Source: Schizochytrium sp. TIO01 (lineage: Eukaryota; Protista; Bigyra: Labyrinthulomycetes). Taken from it: a DNA stretch of 64,000 bases. Location: assembly GCA_004764695.1 (NCBI GenBank), contig SMSO01000032.1:3380483-3444482 (forward strand), read 5' to 3'. Under the pieces are notes generated by a model that was given only the letters and a program-made list of their open reading frames with translations, did no database searches and was not told the DNA's origin. Positions within the stretch are counted from its first letter, which is position 1. Every line of letters begins with the position of its first letter. The position numbers and the translations under genes were made by a program. Below are positions 18,497 to 34,531 of this stretch, piece by piece.

Positions 18497-19472
18497 ACAT
18501 CATTCCGGTTTTATTCGAATAGATACCTGAAACTGGAAGAAGCTGGAGCTAGCAACATGGATTAGAGTTAATGACTGATTTGGCTTGAGTCTTTGCCCCA
18601 AGACAAAAGTGAACTTTACTTTTCTAAAAATAAAAAGGACCTGGAACATATTGAACTTTCAAATTCCTACATGTAGACCAGTATTTGGGTTAAATCCATA
18701 GAATATTTTGGCTTGAAATATTGGTCAAGCGTTTCTTAATAAAGTTGTAGGACGTTGCTCATGACCAATAACACCACCCTGGCTTTAAATGTGTATACTT
18801 GAAAGTAAGGCAACTTATAGCGTAATATCCAAGTTGGTGATGCAGTGCTCAAAGCCCGCATCGTTGGACCCTACCTCTACCTACCTAATAACTCTAGGTA
18901 CCTCATGAAGAGGGAGAGTGATGAATACTCTTTTTTAATATGGGAGTAGGCTTCCATATCAGCAACTGACTGCATTCGGAAGAGCGAAAGGAAGTGATCC
19001 CAGATGAAATCATACCGGCCATTAAGGATAACTTTTTCTGGTAATAGCCTAGAGATTGAAAAGTTAATTGCAATTCAACTGGTCGAGACGATAATAATTA
19101 TCTTGATAGTATGCTGCTACTTCTATTGCTAAAATTCTAAGATAAGACGCGAGGTGGGTAATGGTAGCAGCATGACTAGTTAGTTTCTCTCGAATTTTTG
19201 ATTATCTCCAGATTATTATTTTAAAAAAAAAAAATTACTTCTATGTATACGAGTAAAAAATAATTAGCAATTATAATTTTTATCAATATTATTATTATTA
19301 TTATGAAGTGGGGAGACTTCCAAACTCTAATAGAGTATGTATGCTTCCTTAATTTGCTTCCTTACTTGCTTGCTTTTTTCTTTAGAGGCATTTTGCAAAA
19401 TCAAAACCAAAACGCTGAAGGAAGAATAAACATTTCTTGCCGACAGTCAGGCTAATACTAGTAAACGAAGAG

Positions 19473-21125
19473 ATGATGGAGGAAATGTGGACGAACCCCA
19501 GTCTGCAAGGTATCTTGGTGAACCTGGCGCTTGACATAGTCCGCACAGGTAACCGGCAATTTGACTCTATGATTTCCATGGCACTATTCACCCTCTTCAG
19601 CGCCAGGTCGGAACCCTTTCAAACCTTGACGACCAATGTTTGCAAATATTTGGTCAAGCTGATTTGGTCTGATACTTCATTCACGCGCAACATCATCGCT
19701 ACTAATAACATCAAAAGAAGGTTTCTCTCCAGAGACCCCAATCCAACTGGTGAGCGAAATATACTTCTACAAAAAGCTCTGATATTGTATCTCCACGAGA
19801 AGTACTCAATTGCTTATAAAGATGCAGAGTCTAACCTTATTGCAGCAAAAGAGCTGCAAACGTATAGTCATTCATCACGTTTAACCTCCTACGGGAGCAC
19901 TGTTGAGCACCTAGCCCAGTACAACATGGTCAAAGAACCCTGTGAGGATGAGTGGGTAGAGATAGAAGATAATCTTATGATTTGTCGCCATGTTGTGGAA
20001 AGTAAAGAGGATCAACAAAAGAATTCCCCGGAATACAATATTGAAAAGATTGTATACAAGCTTTGCTCTACACGCAAGGACGGAGATGAACATATTGAAG
20101 CACTCGTCAAAAATGCATTCAGCTGGTACATTGATAAGGTACAGCAGGTGTCCAGTGGCACCAAGCGTTATACTTATGACTTGCTACTTAGCAAACATAA
20201 AAGCTCCAGCAGTCTCGAAGACGGCTTACCCACAAGAAGAAGAGAAATCGATTGCACCAAAACTCTTGAGAATATTTTCTTTCCTGAAAAGGATCAATTC
20301 GTGCGATTAATTGATACTTTTCTGAAGAAGGAGGGTAAATACTCTTCACCTGGTTTTCCCCACAAACTCGGTATTCTTCTTCATGGAGAACCTGGCACCG
20401 GCAAGACATCTATTGCAAAAGCACTTGCCGTGTACACAAACCGGCATCTTGTTCGTATTAGGCTGGGCTCTATTCGTACTAATACGCAGCTCTACCAGGC
20501 CATGATGGACTGTTCCTACAAAGTCCAAGGTGAGGACATGCCAGTCAAGCTTGAATTTAAAGACATTATCTTTTTACTCGAAGATATTGATGCAGATTCA
20601 AAGGTAGTACATCAAAGAGGTAACTATGATGATGAGGATGAAGATGAGAAGGCAAAAGAATTCAACGTGGAGGCCAGGAGCATGATTAACAGACTACTCA
20701 CAGAAGCCAATATAAATGGTGCTCAAGGTCTATTAGAGGATCCCGATTCTCACGAAAAACTCTCTCTTGCAGGCATTCTTGATGTTCTGGACGGCATTCT
20801 CGACACTGAAGGTCGTATCGTTATAATGACAACAAATCACCCTGGCCACTTGGACAATGCACTTATTCGACCTGGTCGTATTGATAAAAAGTACCACCTT
20901 ACATATGCAAGAGCGGAAGCTGTCTGCGCACTAACCCAGCAGTTCTTTGATGGAGTTACTGATGTCCACTTGAAACGAATTAACGAGGTTTTTGGTGATT
21001 CTCGAGTTAAAATTACACCTGCACATGTTGAGTCTCTTGCGAAAGGTGCAGAAAGCGAAGATGATTTCATAGAACAACTTGAGACTTTGGCGGCAAACTC
21101 ACTTCGACGTATAACGTCCATCTAG
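19473..21125 (+). CDS. BCS1-like AAA+ ATPase, paralog B (~550 aa from first ATG)
   Basis: [32 protein letters not shown]; N-terminal RTGNRQFD plus hydrophobic segment shared with paralog C. First ATG is 19473; the track start at 19437 is non-ATG. Confidence 0.9.
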   Translation: MMEEMWTNPSLQGILVNLALDIVRTGNRQFDSMISMALFTLFSARSEPFQTLTTNVCKYLVKLIWSDTSFTRNIIATNNIKRRFLSRDPNPTGERNILLQKALILYLHEKYSIAYKDAESNLIAAKELQTYSHSSRLTSYGSTVEHLAQYNMVKEPCEDEWVEIEDNLMICRHVVESKEDQQKNSPEYNIEKIVYKLCSTRKDGDEHIEALVKNAFSWYIDKVQQVSSGTKRYTYDLLLSKHKSSSSLEDGLPTRRREIDCTKTLENIFFPEKDQFVRLIDTFLKKEGKYSSPGFPHKLGILLHGEPGTGKTSIAKALAVYTNRHLVRIRLGSIRTNTQLYQAMMDCSYKVQGEDMPVKLEFKDIIFLLEDIDADSKVVHQRGNYDDEDEDEKAKEFNVEARSMINRLLTEANINGAQGLLEDPDSHEKLSLAGILDVLDGILDTEGRIVIMTTNHPGHLDNALIRPGRIDKKYHLTYARAEAVCALTQQFFDGVTDVHLKRINEVFGDSRVKITPAHVESLAKGAESEDDFIEQLETLAANSLRRITSI

Positions 21126-21875
21126 GTGGCTTTACATACTTCTATTCTAAATCCTCATTCGATATTCCGTTTATCGGTAAATCCATAGCTAGCAATTTTT
21201 TCTTGTTTTCAAACGAACATCAAAGCATATGATTCTACTCGAAAGAATACCAAACTTTTTTTATATAACTGGAATGAACTTAAATCATGATGCATTGCAA
21301 TCATATTTTAATCGCTCTCCCACGTAGTTAATCGCTTTAATTCTTTCCGATGCTTACAATGTATTCGCTTAATGTTGACAAGGTGAGAACTTTGTAGAGA
21401 TACATAATTAGCAATAGAACCTCGTTTTGAAGCATACACGTTATCATGATTAATAATCCAAAAATAGCAATTGTAGTCACAAGTAAAAGAATACAAAAGT
21501 TGCGAGCCTCCCGAAAATTGCATTCCCTAGAGTACTTCAACAATACCCCCTTACTCTTTCTCGTGAGACGTTTTGCTCTTTAGCTACCAATTCTGTTGTT
21601 AGAGATAACAAGAGTATTTGTTGATTGTGATAAGAGCTTTGAAGACCTTTTCATCAATTTTCGGATACATAGGCATTTTCGCATTATCCTTCGGCAGACG
21701 CATTTCTGAAGGTTTAGGGAAACCAGAAAGAAATCACAAGGAATAAAAACAAACACGCAAAATATGCAGTAGATGCTTATCTTTTAATATGCAGTCACTT
21801 GACTGTTGCAACCATGGACTTTATAGATAAAAGTTTCAAGATGTATAGACAAACGAATTGTTGTGATATAAAGGT

Positions 21876-23792
21876 TCAAGCATAAGCCTCTGCTAACATT
21901 TCGAGCCGAGCAATAAACTCCTCTTCTGTATCTGCCTCCGCAGCAACAGATTCAATCTTTGCTGGCGTGATTTGAACACAGGGGCTGGAAAAGGTCTTCT
22001 GAAGACGGATGCGATTGGCCCTAGTAAGGCTGCCAAAATATAATTTGGTCATGTCACACACAGCGTCAGCTTGCACGTAGGTAAGGTTGAAGATTTTGTC
22101 GATGCGGCCAGGGCGTACCAATGCTTCATCGAGGCGCTCACGATGGTTGGTCGTCATAATCACAATTCGCCCTTCAGTATCGAGAATCCCATCCATCACC
22201 TCTAGCAAGCCCGCAAGGGAGAGTTTGTCCGTCTGAGAAGCCCATGTAGAACGGGTCAACGAGGTCTGATCACCCTTTGATCCGCCAACCGGAGTTGCAA
22301 GGCTTGCGATGATGGCACCAAGCATCTCCGCAGAACCACCCTCAGGTCCACCCTCAGACCCAGTACCATCTAGTATTTCAAGGTCGTCATCATCAGATCC
22401 GTCATTATCCATGATGTGGGAACCAGAATCGTTGTCTTCTACCCCATCAAAGCTCGTGCTAATTGATACGGTCTTAGTGTTATTAAAATCAGATGAAATC
22501 TGGGTACACGATGACGTTTCTTCCTTACACTCTGTTACAGCCGCGCCAATGTTAGTTGTGCTGGCAGGCCTCTCGTTGGCTTCTCCGCTTGGACGACGGT
22601 TCCGGTTGACCTTGGCAGGCGCACGACGATGTACAATCTTTGTGGCCGCATCAACATCCTCAAGCAAGAAGATAACATTCTCATATTTGAGAGTCACAGG
22701 CATGTCTTCCCCTGAGACGCTATAGCGACAATCAATCATTGCACGCTGAAGTTCTTCGTTTGTACGGATGGCCCCCAAGTTGATGGAGATGATATGCCTT
22801 CCAGTGTACTGTGCGAGGGCCTTAGTCACCGATGTCTTGCCGGTTCCTGGAGGGCCATGCATTAAGATCCCGAGCTTGTGCGGGAAGCCCGGGATTTGAT
22901 ACTTGCCACGTTTGTGCATAAAGTTGTCAAGAACTCGCAAGAGATTGTCTTTCTCTGGGAAGAAAATAGAATCAAAAGTCTTACGCCCACTCAGCTCATA
23001 CCTGCGAGCAGGCAATGCATTCGGTGTCTCATCTTGGTTGTCGTCATCGTCGCCTCCCTTGGACTTGCGTTTATTGTTCAGAATATAAAGGTATTTGGTT
23101 TTGTCATCAGTGGTTTTGCGAATGGTTTCTTTATACCAGTCGAATGCACGCTGCAGAAATGATGTAATGTGTTTTGCCCCGTCTGTACGAGTGGAGCGGA
23201 AAGTAAAAATTGTCTTCTTCGTGCGATTTGAAGAGCTTCCACTGGATTCCTCATTGTCTACAACCACCACCTCCCGATAGAACATAAGGTCATCCTCAAT
23301 TTCAGCCCAGTTCTTCTGCATAGGCATATCGATAAGCGAGTAAGCCGAAAGTTGGTCAGCAGTTGTACCATACTGAACATCCCAGGTGTCCTTGTTCATC
23401 GTGTAAGCCTCTTTGGCTGCCATGAGACTGGTCTCGGCGCTCTCATAGTGAATTTTGTCGCGAAGTTCTCCAATATACAATGTGATTGCCTTCTGAAGAA
23501 TATTGTTGCGCCGATCGCCGTCACTAGAGGATCTGCGATAGCCGCCTGACTCCTCAAAGATAATTTCGCGCTCGTACGCGCTGCGACGGCGAGTCAGTTT
23601 GGCCCAGAGAGCAAGCACCCATCTACGCAAATACTGCCTGTAAAAGTTGATTTTAGCCTGCACAATTATGGGCAGCATCATTGCCGCGAACATATCAAGC
23701 ACTGGGTTTCCTGTGCGAAGGATGTTTAAAAGTCCTGACGCAAGACCGGGATTGGCCTGCAAAGCGTCCAGCGGAACTTGTTCATCCGACAT
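21876..23792 (-). CDS. BCS1-like AAA+ ATPase, paralog C (~638 aa from first ATG)
   Basis: [32 protein letters not shown]; N-terminal RTGNPVLD plus hydrophobic helix; aagATG start at 23792. Confidence 0.92.
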
Positions 23793-24846
23793 CTTCGGTT
23801 TACCTTTAATTGCTCTCAAACAGACTTATCTTTTCGGTCAGCTGGTAGCAGCTCCAAGAGCCCAAGCTGAGCAAGTCGCTTTCGCCAACTCAGTTCCTAC
23901 TTTTAAGTAAATCTGGAGAGTTCGGGTTTTGCTGCTGTCAAGGTCTAACTTGGCTTCGATTGCTTTTTCAGAACCCGCTCTCATCACCTCATCATCGGAA
24001 AGCTGTTCATCTCTCCGTCTTGTATCGTTCCTGTATTGTTCCTGTACTGTTCTGGTTCGGTTCTTCACATGGTCGTGAAACCTAAGCCTGAAAAACTCAG
24101 CTTACACTACGAACAAATTGTTGGCCACGTCTAAGCAACGCTCAGTAAGTTGGGCTTGAAACACGTGGCCATACCTCCAAGTTCATAAATAATGTTCTGG
24201 CTCAGAAGACTGGAGCTGTGGCATCTAACAGCAGCCGATCGTAGAACCATCGGCGATTCTATCTGCTGATACTTTTTTAATTTAAAAAATTAAAAGTTAA
24301 AGTTGCTTTTTAATAACAAATCTATACAAACGTTTTTTTGTTTTTGTTTTAATACAAATTAAGAGTTTTTTCAATAAATAGATAATATAATAATAATAAT
24401 AATTATTATTATTATTACAGTAATAACTCGAACTTGCTAGCCTGAGTGAACTTGAATAAAGAATAAAATAAAAGAATGAGTCTGAGAGAGATGATCTCTT
24501 TCTGAATGAGTCCGGCGCTGGACTTCGCGATGATGCTCTCTGGTGTTTTCTAAACGCCTGCTTTGTTCTCCCAAACTTTTCCTTGGGGAGGTTCCTTGTC
24601 CATCATTGGCGCGCCGGACCGACCTTGAATTTCCTAACAGGCTCTTAGGAAATAGAGTGTGTGAACGTGCCGGTGAGCTACGATTTTCAACAATTTCCAG
24701 TTCACTCGGGTTCTGCAACTTTACAATCAACTCCAGCCTCAGCTGGCACACATTGGCTCTGAACTGAAGCCCCAGGTTGCGCAACCAGAAGCGACTTGGA
24801 TTAGGAAAGCACCACAGTGACAGTCATGATATGTATATTACTTCTT

Positions 24847-25095: not shown

Positions 25096-25983
25096 GAATA
25101 TTGATGACCATTTCATGATACCCATAATTGTCACGGTGGTGATGAATATGACGGTTTTATCTGAAGGTGCAACTTGAAGAGATGGAAAACTCATCTCACA
25201 GCCCAACTTATTAAGTTCAAGTGGGTCCGCTAAAGGACGCGAAGATCAACATGCACAACTTGGGAGTGTAGCGCATTGAAGATGAGTTCACGTGTGGGAG
25301 AGAGCGATTACGAACTTTAAGAATGCCAGCATCAAACAGTAACTTGCACGCGACCGCATTGGATCGATCCGAGCCCGTTCCACCATCAATCTTGGGCTCA
25401 GACACGACAATTAATCACATTCAAGATGCTTCCAGCAAGACCTTGAGAGGAGCCTGACAGAAATCAACCTACGGTTGTAGGGACGCGAGATGTATTGCAT
25501 CAATCATTGATGCTCGCAAGCTTCACAAGCCGGTCTGTGCTGTGCTAACTGTTGCAGCTTTTCTCTGTACTGGGCTGGAGAGAGTGTGGAGCGCTGTTAA
25601 GTTTCTGCGATGGTGATGGTCTATATTGCTATTATTAATGGTTCGATTCTAGCACAACTTCAAATTGATCTCACGTTCCTGTATTCTTTATTTGTCATAC
25701 CTACACAATCTAGAACTTCACAAAGATCATATATGAATGCAACTGTATACCTACTTCTTGACAGGTGGTATTGCAGCGAAACTCCATCAAGTCCTACCTA
25801 GGTAGAGGTCTTTTGCAGGTTCCTGCTGTTCCCTTGGCAAGGATCACATGGTTCGTGTGCGGGGAATGAATTGTCTCGCTACCTCATCAAGAAAGTAATA
25901 ATAATATGAGTTTTAGGATATGCACTAGTACAAGGTTAAGCAGTAAATGCCTGAGGCAAAAGACCAACGCGAGCTCTTCGAAG

Positions 25984-28431
25984 ATGGCACCCATCTACTT
26001 GGACTACAACGCAACAACACCTCTGGCACCGGAGGTGTGTGCGAGCCTGGGGTCTCTCCTCCAGGTTGAAGGCAACCCCGCGGCAGTACTCGCGCCGGAG
26101 CTTGCTTGGGGGTAGGTTCACTCACTTCATGAGGTCAAGAATCTCTTGATGATCACAAAAGCTATAACAACAACAACTATAACAATTCCGAAAACAGCAA
26201 TACTGGAATTTGCGATCTACATAGAACTCGATGCTAGTCTGTACAAAATAACCTGAAACAGCAAAATGACTGACGCAAAGCAAAGGTGGATTTCCTTTTC
26301 CCATATTTAACAGCAACCCTTCTTCAGGGCATGTCTATGGCACTTCAGCTAAGACCAAGCTTGAGACTGCTCGAGCTAAGGTTGCAGAAGCTATTGGTGC
26401 TGCAGAGCCACAAGAGATCCTCTTTTTAAGCGGAGGTACAGAATCCATCAACCATGCGATTCAAGGTGCGCTTTGGTGTTCTCGCTTTGAGTTTCAGGAT
26501 CGTAAGAAGCAAGGTGAGGCCAAGCCTGATCCTGGTCAAGAAGCAAATCACGTAGTCACTAGCGCGGTAGAACACGTTGCAGTAAGCGACACTATCAAGT
26601 ATCTTGTAGATCGACATGGATTTTCGTCAACCACAGTTCCGGTAGACGAAAAGTGCCGTGTATCCACTCAGGATGTAGTTCAAGCTGTCACCGAAAAGAC
26701 TGTTCTGGTGACGATTATGTTGGCCAATAATGAGGTTGGCTCTATACAGCCTATTAAGGAGATTGTCCAGGCAATTCGCCAAAGCCCTCACGGCCAGCGT
26801 GTGCTTATTCACACTGACGCGAGTCAGGCAATTGGAAAAATACCTGTCGACGTTCAAGACCTTGGAGTTGACATGATGGTAAGTATCAGACATAATCTTC
26901 GGTTTATCCACTTTGCTCAACTTTCATGCTATGAACAGTCTTTATTTGGGATATTTATGTCACGCATCGGAGGATCTAGACTAACATTGCTATAACGAAA
27001 CTCGCACAAAATCTGTTTTACTTTTGAGTGAAAAATCATAATGACGTGCATTTACAACAGACGTTGGCAGGGCATAAAATATACGGCCCAAAAGGCATTG
27101 GTGCTCTATACATTCGCAGAGGTGTGGAAACTCGACTTTGCAAGTTCATGCACGGCGCTGGCCATGAGCGCGGACTCCGAGCTGGTACTGAAAATGTTCT
27201 TCTTGCCACGGGACTAGGTCGGGCCTGCGAGCTCGTTCAGAACAACATTAGCGAAGAGGTCGAGTTTTATTCAAGTCTCCGTGACAGTTTGCAGCAAGCA
27301 ATTTTATCCAAGTGCCAAGATCTCGGGATAGAAACGTGTGTCAATGGGCACCCGCAAGAGCGCCTGCCGAATACGTTGTCCATATCGTTTCGTGGAATCC
27401 AATCTCCAGATATTCTCGCTCGCCTCGCAGGTCAGGTGTCCTGTAGTGCCGGCGCTGCTTGTCACACTGGCGGTGTGTCTACATCTCATGTTCTTCGAGC
27501 AATGAAGCTAGACGCTGAGTTTGCTGTCGGTACTCTACGCCTCTCGGTAGGTCGGTACACGAAGCCAGAGGACGTGGCGCAAGCTGCAGTTGCCATTACA
27601 GACGCCGTGCAAGCGCTTGCAAACGTTAAAGTAGATTCAGAGAGCCCTTCCACAGGCTGCATACCAACCAAGCTAAAGTATATGGAAGACACTCATTGCT
27701 TTGAAGCAGTCGCTCACGTGATTGATGTTGTTGAAAAGCTTCAGGACGCCAAGGACCCAGACACTGCTGTTATTGTACTTGATGAGACGATCTTTCACCC
27801 CCAAGGTGGTGGCCAGCCTGCGGATGTGGGTGAGATTATAGATGCAGCCACAGGTGCCCGCTTCATCGTTATGCATGTTGAGAAAGAAGCTGGTGTTGTC
27901 AAACACCTGGGCAAATTTGCGGACTCAACTCAAGTTATCCAGGCTGGTTGCAAAGTACACCTTCGCATAGATGAACAAAAGCGAAGGTTTCACGCTCGCA
28001 TCCACAGTGCTGGCCATCTGATTGACCAAGCCATGCGTCTTGCAGGTTGTTCATTACGTCCAACAAAGGGCTTTCACTTCCCATCTGGCCCTTCAGTCGA
28101 CTACGAGGGTGCTCTGTCAGCCGAAGAACGTGCTACATTGCAAAGCTCTCTTCAAGAGTACGTGAATGGCCTCGTGCAGCAGTCCATTCCTACCCGTGTT
28201 TTTGAAACAACTAACGCTGAAGCGGCTGCACATTGTCTTGAAGGACTCGCGCCTCCGGCTGATGAAAATCCTAACGCTGAAATTCGTATGGTCATTGTAG
28301 GCGGAGCTCTTGGATGCCCTTGTGGAGGTACACATGTGAAAAACTCGAGTGAAATCGGACCTATTCACATCCGCAAGCTGCAGAATAAAAAGGGCAACCT
28401 TCGTATTTCCTACGTTGTTGAGGAACAGTAG
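25984..28431 (+). CDS. Selenocysteine lyase/cysteine desulfurase (class V PLP enzyme) fused to a C-terminal AlaX tRNA-editing domain; 3 exons, 687 aa
   Basis: Exons 25984-26111, 26314-26878, 27061-28431 (GT-AG introns, frame preserved). Lyase motifs IYLDYNATTP, AWGNPSS, SGGTES, EH, ANNEVG, HTDASQ, GHK (PLP Lys, 27076), RAGTEN, SAGAACH (catalytic Cys, 27460). AlaX motifs TIFHPQGGGQPAD, HSAGH (28003), CGGTH (28321). Confidence 0.93.
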
Positions 28432-30131
28432 ATTGTTGCTAGTCCGTTGCGGCGACAGCAAGTAAAACAAGGAAAAAGTAAGCATTTATAAAAGAAGTAA
28501 ACATGATTACATTGTCACCAACCGCGACATCTACCATGCGAGTGTTATTAAGTTTACAATGAAAATAATACAGAGTACTCTTGTTTCGTTTTATGGACAA
28601 AAGCCATACAACTGTATTGGCAGCTTTCTATACATGCAAACACAAGACACATGTCGAGGATCGTGAAGAGATGCAGCCATCAAGTCATTAATATAGAAAA
28701 CCAAAACTTGAGAAGCTACATCAGATCAATCTCAAACGAATCATTTTCGATCAAGTTGATATTTAATGGTGGACCATGACTGGCAGAATCTAATCTGCGA
28801 AAGAAAAATTAATGAGTGCAAAAGAACGCCCTAAGAGTTAGTCAAAGATATGTTACGTCATAGAAACGAAGAAGTCGAAACGCGCAATCCATTGATTAAT
28901 TGAAGTAGAGATGACTCGCTACGGTTATTAGTCCGAAAGCATTGGCGGTTCAAGAAAATCTTCTTCAGATCCATTGAGCTAGTCTCGAAAAACAAAGCAA
29001 GCTCAATAAGAAGCTGAATAGAGATTAACATCAGCAAGTAGATCCTCATTTACCTGCCATCTCTATACAATTGTGTCCAGGATAAGAATGGTATCTCGAG
29101 GACCTTCAGAGACTTGCCCGGCAAGTTGGCTTGCTGAGTTTTCAGAACCCCTCCGTATATTAATCTCCAATGCGCGCCCACGGGAACACCTTATCATCGG
29201 CGTCGCGCAGCATGTTGCATAGTATCGTCATCGGGGTGCCATTATCCATCTCCATTGCTCGTTTCCTCGTCTTGGTCGCACTTACCTCGCCATTCATGGT
29301 CTGCTTGATATAGGCATGGGCCTGCTCATGCAAGGCCATTCATTTGCTGCCCTTTAGTTTCATGAAACAGAACAATGATGGAGAAATGAAGGTATGCCCA
29401 CCTAATAGGCTACTATACTAACCTAGGCTTGTAAAAGGTATATCGATCTAACCTTTCCATTTTTACTCAACGTTTCATCTATGTCACATGAATCACCACT
29501 ACTACGATCATTAATAATTCATCGATTTTTATTTTATTTTATTTTTAAACTCTGATTCCGCATTCCAGGACCACACGTTCTCATCCTCTCTGTAGTAATT
29601 GGATTCAGAGTTTGGCCTGGAAACCACTGCAACTAACTACCTTCCTGCCAACCAACTGCCAAACTTCAGGAGTTCTTCTATCGACCCTCATGGGTGACAT
29701 GTAGGGATTTCTCATTTCAAGATGTATGATTGATTTGATTCTATTTGATTTTTGATATTAATGGTTGATCGAACTACTTCGGGCTCTCGATTGTTCTCAA
29801 CGATACTCGACTTTAGATTCCTATAACTCACTTGCGAATTCTATACTCCTAATATAGCAAAGTATAATCTACTTGCATAAGTAGGTTATAGCGAGACCTG
29901 TCCACTGAGGTCTATAGCGACTCTATACGTAGGTAGCGACTGGTCGAGAGAAGGCTTGCAGAAGAACCATTTTCAAGAGTGGTGGAATTCGTCAAGTGAA
30001 TTTCGCTGCTAGACAGCGGTCGCTTTTGAGAAGATCAATAAACCGTGGCATTGCGTAGCGTGGCGTGATTGCTACGTCACGTTACACTCTCTCCAGCCTC
30101 CTTCCTTTGTTTCTCATCGCGTGCGGTCGCC

Positions 30132-32309
30132 ATGAGTGATTCTGAGGATGATGCTGTCCAGGACCGCCTCGTGGTGAACAAGGCTTTCGCTCGCAAGTTC
30201 AACGAGCAGAACCGCCAGGCTGAGCTGCGCCGTGCCGAGCAGACAGGACTTCTTCGCGGTGACGCAGACTCCGACTCCGATGACTCCGAAGACGAAGACG
30301 ACCACGGCGAAGCCCTGACTGCCAAGCTCGACTTCGACATTATGAAAACCATCTCAATGATTCACAACAAAGACAAGCGCATCTACGATGAGAACTTCAA
30401 GCCCTTTGACGGTGCCGATAAATCCGAGCAAAACGATAGCGATAGCAGCGACGAGGAAGACGGCGCAAGCAAGGCCAAGAAGAACAAACCAATGCGTTAC
30501 AAAGATCTCGTGCGAGCACAGGTCTTGAAGCAGGCCGAGGAAGGTGGAGATGCAGCACAAGTGTTTGAGGATTCTGACGACGAGGACGGTGGAAAGAATA
30601 GGAGAAAGGGAAAGTTTGCTGAGGAAAGCGGCGAAAGCGTGCCGGTTTACGATGAGCAGCAGAGACGTCTGAAGGAGGCTTTCAAGGCACAGGCGGACGA
30701 CGAAGATGAGAGCGAAGAAGAGGACGATGAAGACGATGAGGATAAAGATGTTCTTCGAAAAAAAGTGAAGTCCAAGGAGGAGCTAGAGGCTGAGGAGAAC
30801 AACTTCAACAAGTATATGTCCAGCTTGGCGAAGCAAGACCCTAGAATGCGCAAGGCGCGTAAGGAGGATGTGGAAATGTTGGAAACTTTCTTCAAGGAGC
30901 CTGCGAAAGATAAGGATGAGGCGTTCCTGCGAAAGTTCTTCTTGAACCAGGCATGGACGGACCAGGAGGGTCTCGAAGCGTCGCGACAGAATGCATTGGA
31001 TGACGAAGATGAAGACGAGGAGGCCCTTGACGAAGCGGACCGCTTTGAGGCCAAGTACAACTTTCGCCATGAAGAGCCTGGCGCAGGCGAATTGGGATCT
31101 ACACAGGTGGACCCGAACTCCACGATTCGACGCAAGGAAAGCTCTCGACGCCGTCAGCGAGAGGCAAAGCGTCAACGCAAACAAGAGGAGAAGGAGAAGC
31201 GCAAGGAAGAGCTGCGCAGACTGAAGAACCTTAAACGCAAGGAGCTCGAGAAGCGTCTTGAGAAGTCTATTCGTATGGCCGGTCTCAATGAGGATGCCGA
31301 AATTGGCCTCAAACCCGAGGATCTCGAAGGCGACTTTGACCCTGAAGAGTTCGACCGTCGTATGGCACAGATCTTCAACGACGACTATTACGATCAGGAC
31401 GACGATGGCTTCGAGGCTACTGGCGACGTCGCTGCCGAAGAAGAAATGTTTGGCAAGGGTGACGACGAGGAGGATGAAGACGAGGAGCAGAAGAAGGACA
31501 GCGATAGCGATAGTGACAGTGATAGCGACGATGAGGACGAAGGTGTGAAGATTGTTGACCGAGCTGAAGACGATCCCTCTACCCAAGCAGCCGCAGAAGA
31601 CGAGAAGCAGAAGAGAAGAAAGAAGAAGGGCAAGGAAGAAGAACTCAAGTCAATATCGGTGAAGGACTTGAAGGACAAGGTTATCAACGAACAGCTGTAC
31701 AAGATGGACTACGACGATGTCATTGGTGGAGACATCAAGACCCGCTTCAAGTACCGCAAGGTTACTCCGAACTCATATGGTCTGAGTACAGAGGAAATCC
31801 TCTTCGCCGACGAGGATTTGCTTAACAGCTTCGTCTCTATCAAGAAACTCGCTCCTTACGAGGAGAACGAGTGGCATGCATCTACAAAGCACCGTAAGCG
31901 CTTCCGTAAGGCACTTAAGGACCGTATTGAAGGTGTTACTGAGATGAAGGAGAAGAAGACCAAACGCGACCGCAAGCGGGCCAAGCTTGAGAAGCTCAAA
32001 GCTAAGCAGGAGGCCCTCGAAGAGTCCCAGGAAGAGGAGGATGACAACGAAGAGACTGAGTCCGCACAGAAGGGAGACAAGAAGAAGAAGGACAAAAAGG
32101 AAAAGAAGGAAGATAACGAAGACGGATCAAAGAAGAAACGCAAACGTAAGCGGAAGAACAAGAACGGAGACGCCGGCGAAGGCGAGAACGAAGAAGAAAA
32201 CAAGCAAATTGAGGAAAAGCCTGAGGACAATGCTGAAGGTGAGGATGGCCAAAAGAAAAAGCGGAAGCGGAAGCGGAAGAACAAGACTGCTGAGAATGAT
32301 GACGAATAA
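30132..32309 (+). CDS. KRI1: KRI1 40S ribosome biogenesis factor
   Basis: DEAFLRKFFLNQAW, DRFEAKYNFRHEEPG, DLEGDFDPEEFDRRM, TRFKYRKV..NSYGLSTEEILFAD, LNSFVSIKKLAPY; acidic and basic tracts; ATG at 30132. Confidence 0.93.
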   Translation: MSDSEDDAVQDRLVVNKAFARKFNEQNRQAELRRAEQTGLLRGDADSDSDDSEDEDDHGEALTAKLDFDIMKTISMIHNKDKRIYDENFKPFDGADKSEQNDSDSSDEEDGASKAKKNKPMRYKDLVRAQVLKQAEEGGDAAQVFEDSDDEDGGKNRRKGKFAEESGESVPVYDEQQRRLKEAFKAQADDEDESEEEDDEDDEDKDVLRKKVKSKEELEAEENNFNKYMSSLAKQDPRMRKARKEDVEMLETFFKEPAKDKDEAFLRKFFLNQAWTDQEGLEASRQNALDDEDEDEEALDEADRFEAKYNFRHEEPGAGELGSTQVDPNSTIRRKESSRRRQREAKRQRKQEEKEKRKEELRRLKNLKRKELEKRLEKSIRMAGLNEDAEIGLKPEDLEGDFDPEEFDRRMAQIFNDDYYDQDDDGFEATGDVAAEEEMFGKGDDEEDEDEEQKKDSDSDSDSDSDDEDEGVKIVDRAEDDPSTQAAAEDEKQKRRKKKGKEEELKSISVKDLKDKVINEQLYKMDYDDVIGGDIKTRFKYRKVTPNSYGLSTEEILFADEDLLNSFVSIKKLAPYEENEWHASTKHRKRFRKALKDRIEGVTEMKEKKTKRDRKRAKLEKLKAKQEALEESQEEEDDNEETESAQKGDKKKKDKKEKKEDNEDGSKKKRKRKRKNKNGDAGEGENEEENKQIEEKPEDNAEGEDGQKKKRKRKRKNKTAENDDE

Positions 32310-33073: not shown

Positions 33074-34531
33074 TCAATGCGAGGGCGGCTCGTGGTCCCC
33101 ATTGGCAAAGGATTTGTTCAGCGGAATGCGCTCAACATCGCAGTCATAGGTTTTCGGGTTGAGCTTGATAACAGTGTTGAGAGGGATCGACACAAAGGGT
33201 GCATCCTCGCGAGTACCGCCCACAAAGTAAGCATAGATTATCCGGAGAATTCCCTGGTGTCCAACAATGAGGACGGGGTCGCGCTGCTTCTCTACTTCAT
33301 GGATAATGGGATCAAGACGGGCAATAACATCAAGGTAGGACTCGCCACGAGGGTAGCGGTAGCCGAGCTTATCATCCGCACGGCGTTTGAACTCCTCAGG
33401 TGCCTTCTCTTCAATCTCTTTATAGGTGAAGCCGTCAAAAGCACCAGCATGAATCTCTGACAGGCTCGAGCAGATGCGCGGGCGCATGATAATCCAGCCA
33501 TCGTCGCATTTGTGGTGCACAATGTGACGAGCCGTGAGCTGCGTGCGCTGCAGTGAACTTGTGTAAAGGCGTGCGTGCGGAACAACACGGTTTTCCTCAT
33601 CTTTGAAGGTACCGTCCTCGTTGAGTCCAAGAATCTCAGTGTGCACGAACCTGGCTAACTCCTTTGCGTATTGTTCGCCGCTCTCGCTCAATTTTGAGTC
33701 ACCTCCAATTTTGTTAAGCACATTATACTGGGATTGGCCATGTCGAGATAGGAAGATCTGACGAGGTGTAGTGTGAAGATTCATGAGAAACTGGACCATT
33801 TTGCCGGGCAAGAAGCCAGAGATGTGGTTCATAGAAATATTACGGCCTCCATCGATGAGCTTAATCCAAGAGAGTTCGCGATCAACCTTGGACTGTTCGT
33901 CGAGGGGCTCATACACTGACCTGTAGTGCTCAATACGCTGCATAAAGTCTTCCACGGCGCTCTGCTCGTCCATGTCCTGGTAATCTGGCATGCTCAATTT
34001 GGTTTCGCGCACATTAGACTCAATCATCTCGCCGCTTCGCACAACACTCTCAACAAAGATAAGTTTGTTTGTAGTTTCCAGGTGAGGAAGGAGCTGTTCG
34101 CAGATCCATGTGCGGCGCTCACGGCTCGTGTTCGTGGCGTCGTAGATGGCAACTCGGGAGCGGTGGTCCGAGGTCTGAATCCACTGGATTAGGTCATCCA
34201 TGGCTTCCTGAGCGCATTGGTTGCGAAGCTTGCAGTTTTCCTCGTTGGACGGGTCGAAGAAGGTGTGAGGTGACTTGGCACCGACCAACTTGCGGCGGTA
34301 GTTACCCACGTTGAACACCTTGGTCTCGGCTCCATGAAAGAACTGCAAGTACTGGTTAAGCCTCCGAGCAATGTAGGTCTTGCCAGTGGCGGGAAGTCCA
34401 ACCAAGGCAATGACGTACTTGTCTCCATTGTTGTACACCGTGGGCATCTCTGCTTGAGGTTCAGGGTTATCAACATCAGCGAGGAGGTGGTCGTAGCCCA
34501 CCAGGCTCGTGCTGCTCGTGGATTCCTGCAT
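33074..34531 (-). CDS. PFKFB: Bifunctional 6-phosphofructo-2-kinase/fructose-2,6-bisphosphatase, 485 aa
   Basis: Kinase motifs GLPATGKT, FNVGNYRR, DATN; His-phosphatase motifs RHGQS, YRYPRGESY, HQG. Confidence 0.95.
   Translation of the reverse strand: MQESTSSTSLVGYDHLLADVDNPEPQAEMPTVYNNGDKYVIALVGLPATGKTYIARRLNQYLQFFHGAETKVFNVGNYRRKLVGAKSPHTFFDPSNEENCKLRNQCAQEAMDDLIQWIQTSDHRSRVAIYDATNTSRERRTWICEQLLPHLETTNKLIFVESVVRSGEMIESNVRETKLSMPDYQDMDEQSAVEDFMQRIEHYRSVYEPLDEQSKVDRELSWIKLIDGGRNISMNHISGFLPGKMVQFLMNLHTTPRQIFLSRHGQSQYNVLNKIGGDSKLSESGEQYAKELARFVHTEILGLNEDGTFKDEENRVVPHARLYTSSLQRTQLTARHIVHHKCDDGWIIMRPRICSSLSEIHAGAFDGFTYKEIEEKAPEEFKRRADDKLGYRYPRGESYLDVIARLDPIIHEVEKQRDPVLIVGHQGILRIIYAYFVGGTREDAPFVSIPLNTVIKLNPKTYDCDVERIPLNKSFANGDHEPPSH

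Follow-up and report, generated by a model that had tools for sequence, protein, structure and literature searches.

The gene at positions 25984-28431 (+) of a 64,000-nucleotide (nt) stretch of the Schizochytrium sp. TIO01 genome (contig SMSO01000032.1 of assembly GCA_004764695.1; the whole stretch is referred to as the window) encoded a class V pyridoxal 5'-phosphate (PLP) enzyme and an AlaX tRNA-editing domain in a single polypeptide. This fusion, which had been described in an earlier note made from the letters of the window, is confirmed; it is real and is transcribed as one mRNA. Both halves are known families, each with other known fusion partners. The note did not know their combination as a characterised architecture, and full-text literature searches likewise found no paper describing an Aminotran_5/NifS plus AlaX protein; this pairing is undescribed in the literature found. 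The favoured reading, to which we assign a probability of approximately 0.45, is that two canonical activities would be tethered on one protein, and the gene would probably yield a cytosolic two-domain enzyme.

Gene structure and a single spliced mRNA

The gene comprised three exons with 687 codons in sum, as read from the sequence. Exon 1 (25984-26111, +) began the coding sequence and supplied the N-terminal end of the PLP domain (MAPIYLDYNATTP...AWG) and ended in phase 2 at a GTAGGT donor. Exon 2 (26314-26878, +) encoded the middle of the PLP domain (NPSSGHVYG ... HTDASQ ... VDMM) between an AG acceptor and a GTAAGT donor, and exon 3 (27061-28431, +) contained the last third of the PLP domain, then the linker and the entire AlaX-M domain, followed by a TAG stop. 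Both introns (26112-26313, +, 202 nt; 26879-27060, +, 182 nt) were bounded by GT..AG. The earlier note had placed the fusion within a single exon, which holds for the junction, the linker, the AlaX domain, and the last ~190 residues of the PLP domain, all located in exon 3, but not for the PLP domain as a whole, which spans three exons. All motifs quoted in that note were found where it had placed them, including YLDYNATTP (25996-26022, +) and AWG|NPSS (+), which is split by intron 1.

In a run search, the stretch was matched in 23 sequencing runs from 12 studies. Runs of 20-49 million letters contained 0.80-0.89 of the words of the stretch, which is approximately the fraction expected without both introns. 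Contigs of four runs, each from a different study, were aligned to positions 25500-29000, and both splice joints (26111|26314 and 26878|27061) were exact in all four, skipping 202 and 182 nt with GT..AG borders. In each of these runs, a single contig contained exon 2 and exon 3 and continued unbroken through the linker into the 3' region, and one RNA-derived contig of 2747 nt covered the whole spliced coding sequence. The RNA check across the linker and both introns that the earlier note had named, made here with contigs, thus revealed no splicing or ending between the domains in four studies. An assembly or annotation artefact was ruled out by the single-exon junction together with the RNA contigs. 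Some lower-depth contigs kept intron 1, and unspliced 261-nt contigs at 26082-26342 were present in three of the four RNA-type runs; these represent intron retention, pre-mRNA, or DNA carry-over. Three runs differed from the window at 27716 (A>G), which changes His to Arg (CAC to CGC) at the variable start of the AlaX beta-barrel and is probably a strain polymorphism, and G>T and T>C differences were observed at 25943-25944 in two runs.

Transcript starts appear heterogeneous. The list of open reading frames (ORFs) contained an optional in-frame upstream extension (25906-25983, +; MSFRICTSTRLSSKCLRQKTNASSSK), which starts with an ATG at 25906 and consists of 26 basic and hydroxylated, presequence-like residues. 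RNA contigs started at 25908 in one run and at 25956 in another, so the ATG at 25906 probably lies outside most transcripts; lower-depth contigs of two other runs extended farther upstream than these positions. The start at 25984 leaves three residues ahead of the conserved PLP core, and therefore the main product should be cytosolic. The claim that the protein has no presequence is correct for the ATG at 25984, but the in-frame ATG at 25906 could add 26 presequence-like residues. Two out-of-frame upstream ATGs (25920; 25947-26069) form a 2-codon upstream ORF and a 40-codon upstream ORF that overlaps the main start.

Database searches were made exon by exon, and not on the joined protein of 687 amino acids (aa). 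Pfam Aminotran_5 was matched by exon 2 (116.5 bits) and by residues 3-173 of exon 3 (69.2 bits; cut-off 21.5), and exon 3 also contained the AlaRS beta-barrel piece (residues 192-306) and tRNA_SAD (residues 408-449). No AIRS/AIRS_C (SelD) domain was found among the Pfam matches of the fusion gene. Among the NCBIfam models, NifS ranked first over the PLP region and AlaXM over the C-terminal region. The exons scored apart reached 157.8 and 172.3 bits with the NifS model (TIGR03402), for which the equivalog cut-off of 530.75 applies to the whole protein, and the AlaXM score of 108.2 bits was below the equivalog cut-off of 300.

Distribution of the fusion and the AlaX-M domain

Exon 3 was searched against 5.8 billion proteins and the AlaX domain against 1.84 billion representatives. 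At least 22 protein clusters (90% identity) carried both domains, including ~20 from the exon-3 search and two more from the representatives, which rules out that the fusion is unique to this assembly, an outcome that the earlier note had said would count against its proposal. The members included a protein of Hondaea fermentalgiana (62% identity; annotated as "cysteine desulfurase, mitochondrial, partial"), complete fused ORFs of 695 and 689 aa in transcriptomes of the Marine Microbial Eukaryote Transcriptome Sequencing Project (including a thraustochytrid), a 678-aa fused protein of Platysulcus tardus, and a 729-aa entry of the Transcriptome Shotgun Assembly database. Other members were metagenomic and look like diatoms and high-GC algae by composition. 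Several short entries that seemed to be free AlaX proteins were fragments of fused genes, as they belonged to the same 90% clusters as 657-aa or ~790-aa proteins. The fusion gene was single-copy in the source genome (64 Mb, 37 contigs). Its neighbors (19437-23819, 30069-32309, and 33074-34531) were two convergent AAA-ATPase genes, a KRI1 homologue, and a 6-phosphofructo-2-kinase/fructose-2,6-bisphosphatase, which are housekeeping genes without functional relation to the fusion gene.

The AlaX-M type editing domain (27670-28428, +), assigned from NCBIfam and its predicted structure, consisted of a beta-barrel and an editing core. It contained the Gly-rich GGGQ of the beta-barrel subdomain (27805-27816, +), which was invariant in both fused and free AlaX-M, and two zinc motifs, HSAGH (28003-28017, +) and CGGTH (28321-28335, +), aligned to H564 and H568 and to C666 and H670 of E. 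coli AlaRS, respectively. These motifs and the domain matches confirm that a complete AlaX with intact zinc ligands follows the PLP enzyme in frame. The AlphaFold2 model of the domain had a predicted local distance difference test (pLDDT) score of 95.9, matched the AlaRS editing domain, and showed the two-subdomain fold of the AlaX-M structures 2E1B, 9IUW, and 3KEW with template modeling (TM) scores of 0.82-0.83. The search of the representatives returned 259 relatives below 1e-30, most of which were free proteins of 220-320 aa with 36-51% identity from eukaryotes and archaea; given so many free relatives, the domain is part of a broader AlaX-M-like group. In the AlaX tree, the fused sequences were all located in one half, mixed with free ones.

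A comparison of 21 fused and 136 free sequences showed each of the 34 strongly conserved columns to be identical in the two sets, and the search for specificity-determining positions detected no column that was conserved in the fused set only. These unchanged positions give no sign of an altered active site, and ordinary deacylation of Ser- and Gly-tRNA(Ala) would be the simplest expectation. The C-terminal ~255 aa would thus represent an unaltered AlaX-M that most likely hydrolyzes these two substrates as free AlaX-M does. A second AlaX in the genome was an unfused AARSD1-like paralogue (contig C30, -; 424-aa frame) with tRNA_SAD and a beta-barrel piece. Some close AlaX-M relatives were preceded by other N-terminal partners, namely the IF-2B family (MtnA/eIF2B-like), AMPK1_CBM (CBM48-like), and FG-GAP repeats; these pairings are candidate fusions or merged gene calls.

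The inter-domain linker NVKVDSESPSTGCIPT (27622-27669, +), located inside exon 3, was not conserved and ranged from roughly 15 to 100 residues among homologues. In the AlphaFold model of a full-length homologue (mean pLDDT of 85.6), both domains were well folded and the linker had a pLDDT below 50, and it is predicted to be flexible and disordered. The predicted TM-score of the same model was 0.61, and hence no fixed mutual pose of the PLP and AlaX domains is predicted. The earlier note had offered three mechanisms by which the domains might be coupled, and no support was found for any of them: AlaX had no fusion-specific residue, the linker was variable and disordered, and there was no inter-domain pose.

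The first of these mechanisms would have AlaX remove selenocysteine (Sec) or Cys from wrongly charged tRNA and the lyase tethered to it break down the freed amino acid immediately. Sec and Cys both closely resemble Ser, on which AlaX normally acts, and a lyase is present on the same chain in a conserved fusion. On the other hand, the pocket residues of AlaX are the same as those of free AlaX-M and nothing marks a shift to Sec/Cys; the lack of any fusion-specific conserved AlaX residue argues against such a new specificity. Furthermore, the flexible linker provides no channel, and literature searches found neither charging of Cys or Sec by AlaRS nor action of AlaX on Cys or Sec. This mechanism is therefore considered improbable.

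The PLP domain and its selenium context

The catalytic motifs of the PLP domain were intact. The PLP-binding Lys of the A-G-H-K motif (27076-27078, +; H234, K235), the catalytic loop Cys (codon 27460-27462; C363) of GAAC-H-T (27460-27465, +), RAGTEN, LPNT, and the substrate Arg were all invariant in 19 fusion homologues. The N-terminal ~410 aa would accordingly form a catalytically complete group-I NifS-like enzyme, which would move Se or S from Sec or Cys onto the loop Cys and release alanine. Sec-specific human selenocysteine lyase (SCL) is separated from the desulfurases at three positions, D146, V256, and H389, of which D146 is the key residue for Sec specificity (PMC3266270). At the first position, group-I desulfurases contain Lys, the window protein contains Val (codon 26576-26578, +, in EH-V, by alignment to EHDSI of rat SCLY), and the fusion family contains V, P, A, I, C, or E; the Lys characteristic of group-I desulfurases is thus missing. 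At the second position, which precedes GHK, the Ser/Thr of the desulfurases is replaced by Ala in the window protein and invariantly in the fusion family. At the third position, directly after the catalytic Cys, the desulfurases have Thr or Ala, the window protein has His, and the fusion family mostly has His.

Comparisons over longer regions gave a mixed picture. Exon 2 alone was best matched by rat SCLY (122 bits) and shared the insertion of SCLY after the GGTES helix, and exon 3 alone scored 113 bits with NFS1/IscS versus 85 bits with SCLY. The profile of the fusion family gave 395 bits with IscS, 390 with NFS1, and 374 with SCLY, and was thus not closer to SCLY. The predicted PLP structure fitted SCLY, IscS, and NFS1 equally (TM of about 0.9), and a search of the ESM Atlas was uninformative, as all matches, SCLY and desulfurases alike, scored 0.82. 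The earlier view that the domain resembles SCLY more than mitochondrial NFS1 agrees with the Cys-His pair, the absence of the desulfurase Lys, the SelD-fused relatives, and the Sec machinery described below, whereas the Val at the Asp146 position and the profile scores do not fit it; as an overall statement, it is not supported by the sequence comparisons. The fusion PLP domain is clearly distinct from the mitochondrial enzyme, because the NFS1 of this genome is a separate gene and a distant outgroup in the PLP tree. NFS1 was the only other group-I enzyme in the genome and had a ~97-aa N-terminal extension ahead of its PLP domain in the open frame. More distant Aminotran_5 paralogues included three within 27 kb (C36:3077769-3104888), one of which was in a frame of >1000 aa, and two in tandem (C6:334689-337820).

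The profile scores and the absent Asp146 would also agree with the PLP domain being a cytosolic cysteine desulfurase that supplies persulfide for tRNA thiolation, a pathway fed by IscS-type enzymes, or for control of the Zn-Cys site of AlaX. However, the nearest relatives of the domain are SelD-fused, and to our knowledge AlaX does not act as a sulfur acceptor. In addition, the Lys at position 146 that was necessary and sufficient for desulfurase activity in human SCL (PMC3266270) is absent as well. A dedicated desulfurase role thus appears quite improbable, while some cysteine desulfurase activity of the domain would be possible.

Relatives of the PLP domain were sought with the PLP part of the full-length fusion homologue P0004. 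The non-AlaX relatives were 51-56% identical over the entire domain. The bacterial ones were of two kinds, namely NifS-like proteins of 382-383 aa and ~739-aa NifS-SelD fusions named "cysteine desulfurase NifS/selenium donor protein", with about half being SelD-fused. The eukaryotic ones comprised one NifS-SelD fusion and one unfused Bigelowiella protein. EH-P, A-GHK, and C-H were present in 102 of 102 bacterial sequences examined, a signature that is common to the fusion as EH-[P/V]. In the PLP tree, the AlaX-fused and unfused eukaryotic domains formed one group (support of 92) inside a starred clade, nested among bacterial NifS-like sequences, with the NFS1 of this genome far outside. The fusion may have a single origin, and its PLP domain would represent a eukaryotic clade that branches within bacterial NifS-like proteins, with selenophosphate synthetase as a frequent fusion partner of the latter.

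This relatedness also bears on the idea that the PLP domain acts on aminoacyl-tRNA itself, converting Cys- or Sec-tRNA to Ala-tRNA, with AlaX as a tRNA-binding module. Fold-type-I PLP enzymes that act on aminoacyl-tRNA do exist (SepSecS and SepCysS); SepSecS is present in this genome, and the fusion places a domain that binds the tRNA end beside a PLP site. Nevertheless, the PLP domain retains the full NifS signature for free amino acids and shares 51-56% identity with ordinary NifS modules, the hydrolytic residues of AlaX are all retained and the domain is not reduced to a binding module, and no inter-domain pose is predicted. Such a conversion is accordingly regarded as very improbable.

Profile searches of the contigs indicated that the genome harbors SelD, SepSecS, and tRNA-Sec. 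The SelD match (C36:4255747-4256697) was located on another contig than the fusion, in a 647-aa frame with Pyr_redox_2 N-terminal to AIRS/AIRS_C. The frame contained no in-frame stop, and SelD is thus a Cys or other non-Sec form. A fusion of this kind, between an NADH dehydrogenase-like domain and selenophosphate synthetase (SPS), has been described for protists (PMC4561486). The tRNA-Sec candidate (C36:4224424-4224509, -) scored 70.4 bits against a gathering score of 47 and was located ~31 kb from the SelD gene; two weaker tRNA-Sec matches of 45 bits were present on C15 and C37. Fusions of NifS with SPS have been described, and SPS receives selenium from NifS-like proteins (PMC4561486). In view of the SelD-fused relatives and the Sec machinery of the genome, selenium mobilization would be the most likely role of the PLP domain, and a selenium-delivery role is plausible; that selenium rather than sulfur is the substrate we infer from relatedness and the logic of the fusion.

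The same context suggests another possible partner for AlaX. Human AlaX hydrolyzes Ser-tRNA(Sec) in vitro, ignores the acceptor-stem sequence, and has relaxed tRNA specificity (PMC11260482, Zeng et al., 2024). The AlaX domain of the fusion might similarly recognize the seryl end of Ser-tRNA(Sec) and physically link selenium recycling to Sec-tRNA synthesis, either by docking the lyase beside SPS2/SepSecS or by clearing unconverted Ser-tRNA(Sec) when selenium is scarce. The SelD-fused nearest relatives of the PLP domain, the presence of SelD, SepSecS, and tRNA-Sec in the organism, and the conservation of the fusion across protists are consistent with this proposal. However, the human enzyme is of the AARSD1 type and not AlaX-M, and the genome has an AARSD1-like gene of its own. 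Moreover, R693 of E. coli AlaRS, which contacts G3:U70, aligned with an Arg at exon-3 residue 448 (most homologues have K or R), with a register that is uncertain by one residue; if this basic residue is kept, tRNA(Ala) would be favored. Fused AlaX domains have no specific residues of their own, and free AlaX-M also occurs in organisms that may or may not use Sec. Recognition of Ser-tRNA(Sec) is therefore rated as unlikely, although it is the main alternative to the favoured reading.

Assessment and comparison with known systems

The reading preferred here is that each domain most likely runs its canonical chemistry, with a flexible and poorly conserved linker between them. The most likely job of the PLP domain, judged from its SelD-fused bacterial relatives, would be to recycle selenocysteine and pass selenium to SelD/SPS2, and the AlaX-M domain would clear Ser- and Gly-tRNA(Ala). 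The fusion would then provide co-expression and co-localization at the machinery of aminoacyl-tRNA and Sec synthesis, with no new reaction. In this reading, we also infer which tRNA is the substrate and why the two domains are fused.

Several points weigh against this reading. The activities of both domains are predictions from sequence. The Asp146 of Sec-specific SCL is replaced by Val, which leaves a preference for Sec as a prediction, and the family profile is not closer to SCLY. The PLP tree was a quick maximum-likelihood tree, and animal SCLY was not among its sequences. The unfused relative was inspected at 80 Dehalococcoidia/SAR202 loci, none of which had selD or alaX within 10 kb, and the neighbors checked at unfused SAR202 NifS-like loci were unrelated. 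Sec-containing SelD was present in all five SAR202 genomes with the unfused relative, and SelD in 12 of 12 Chloroflexota genomes with a NifS-like match of at least 53% identity, which is a weak test given the background: in the Chloroflexota sample, a NifS-like match was found in 193 of 201 genomes and SelD in 146 of 201 (73%), and for this reason co-occurrence with SelD says little. Lastly, retention of the fusion in deep protist lineages suggests more than co-expression. As a separate observation, Sec-containing SelD with an in-frame TGA was very common in Chloroflexota/SAR202, where most of the SelD matches listed had one TGA.

When a gene fusion is retained in distant lineages, this is one of the better predictors that its partners work together. 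The conserved fusion could accordingly reflect a functional link between selenium recycling and the handling of seryl- or selenocysteinyl-tRNA, in which AlaX acts on Ser-tRNA(Sec) or on Sec/Cys-charged tRNA beside the lyase; this can be put forward as a tentative possibility. If it is true, selenium or sulfur mobilization would be tied to aminoacyl-tRNA quality control, which fits the Ser-tRNA(Sec) result for human AlaX, and AlaX-M would contribute in a so far unrecognized way to the Sec pathway in protists and, by the same logic, in any organism that has the two as separate proteins. It would also offer a testable handle on selenocysteine recycling in protists and on the function of eukaryotic AlaX-M. 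If the two halves are instead independent, as the tethering of two canonical activities would imply, the gene still encodes an expressed and conserved bifunctional enzyme that is mislabeled, as with the "cysteine desulfurase, mitochondrial" of Hondaea.

Among known systems, the NifS-SelD fusions of bacteria and some protists (Geobacter FRC-32, Acanthamoeba, and Naegleria; PMC4561486) resemble the fusion protein in having a Se/S-mobilizing PLP domain N-terminal to a partner domain, and their NifS module is 51-56% identical and has the same signature. Their partner, in contrast, is SelD, whereas here it is an AlaX-M deacylase and SelD is encoded by a gene of its own, joined to a pyridine-nucleotide oxidoreductase domain. 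Animal SCLY (EC 4.4.1.16; PDB 3GZC and 3A9X) shares the group-I fold (TM of about 0.9; 39-40% identity to the model), the active-site-loop Cys-His, the absence of Lys at the D146 position, the insertion after GGTES, and the lack of a long presequence. Unlike SCLY, which has no tRNA-editing domain, the fusion protein has Val for Asp146 and Ala for V256, and its profile scores SCLY below IscS and NFS1.

Free AlaX-M (P. horikoshii PH0108, 2E1B; P. furiosus, 9IUW) has the same two-subdomain fold and the invariant GGGQ, HxxxH, and CxxxH, but the AlaX-M domain described here is fused C-terminal to a PLP enzyme and is only about 25% identical to the archaeal structures. Several seryl-tRNAs, Ser-tRNA(Sec) among them, can be substrates of eukaryotic AlaX (PMC11260482). 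Precedents for AlaX on proteins other than AlaRS are Plasmodium TrpRS, which has an N-terminal AlaX-like domain (PMC3680381), and human AARSD1/AlaX (PMC11260482). The partners in these proteins are tRNA synthetases or C-Ala domains, whereas the partner in Schizochytrium sp. TIO01 is an amino-acid-degrading PLP enzyme.

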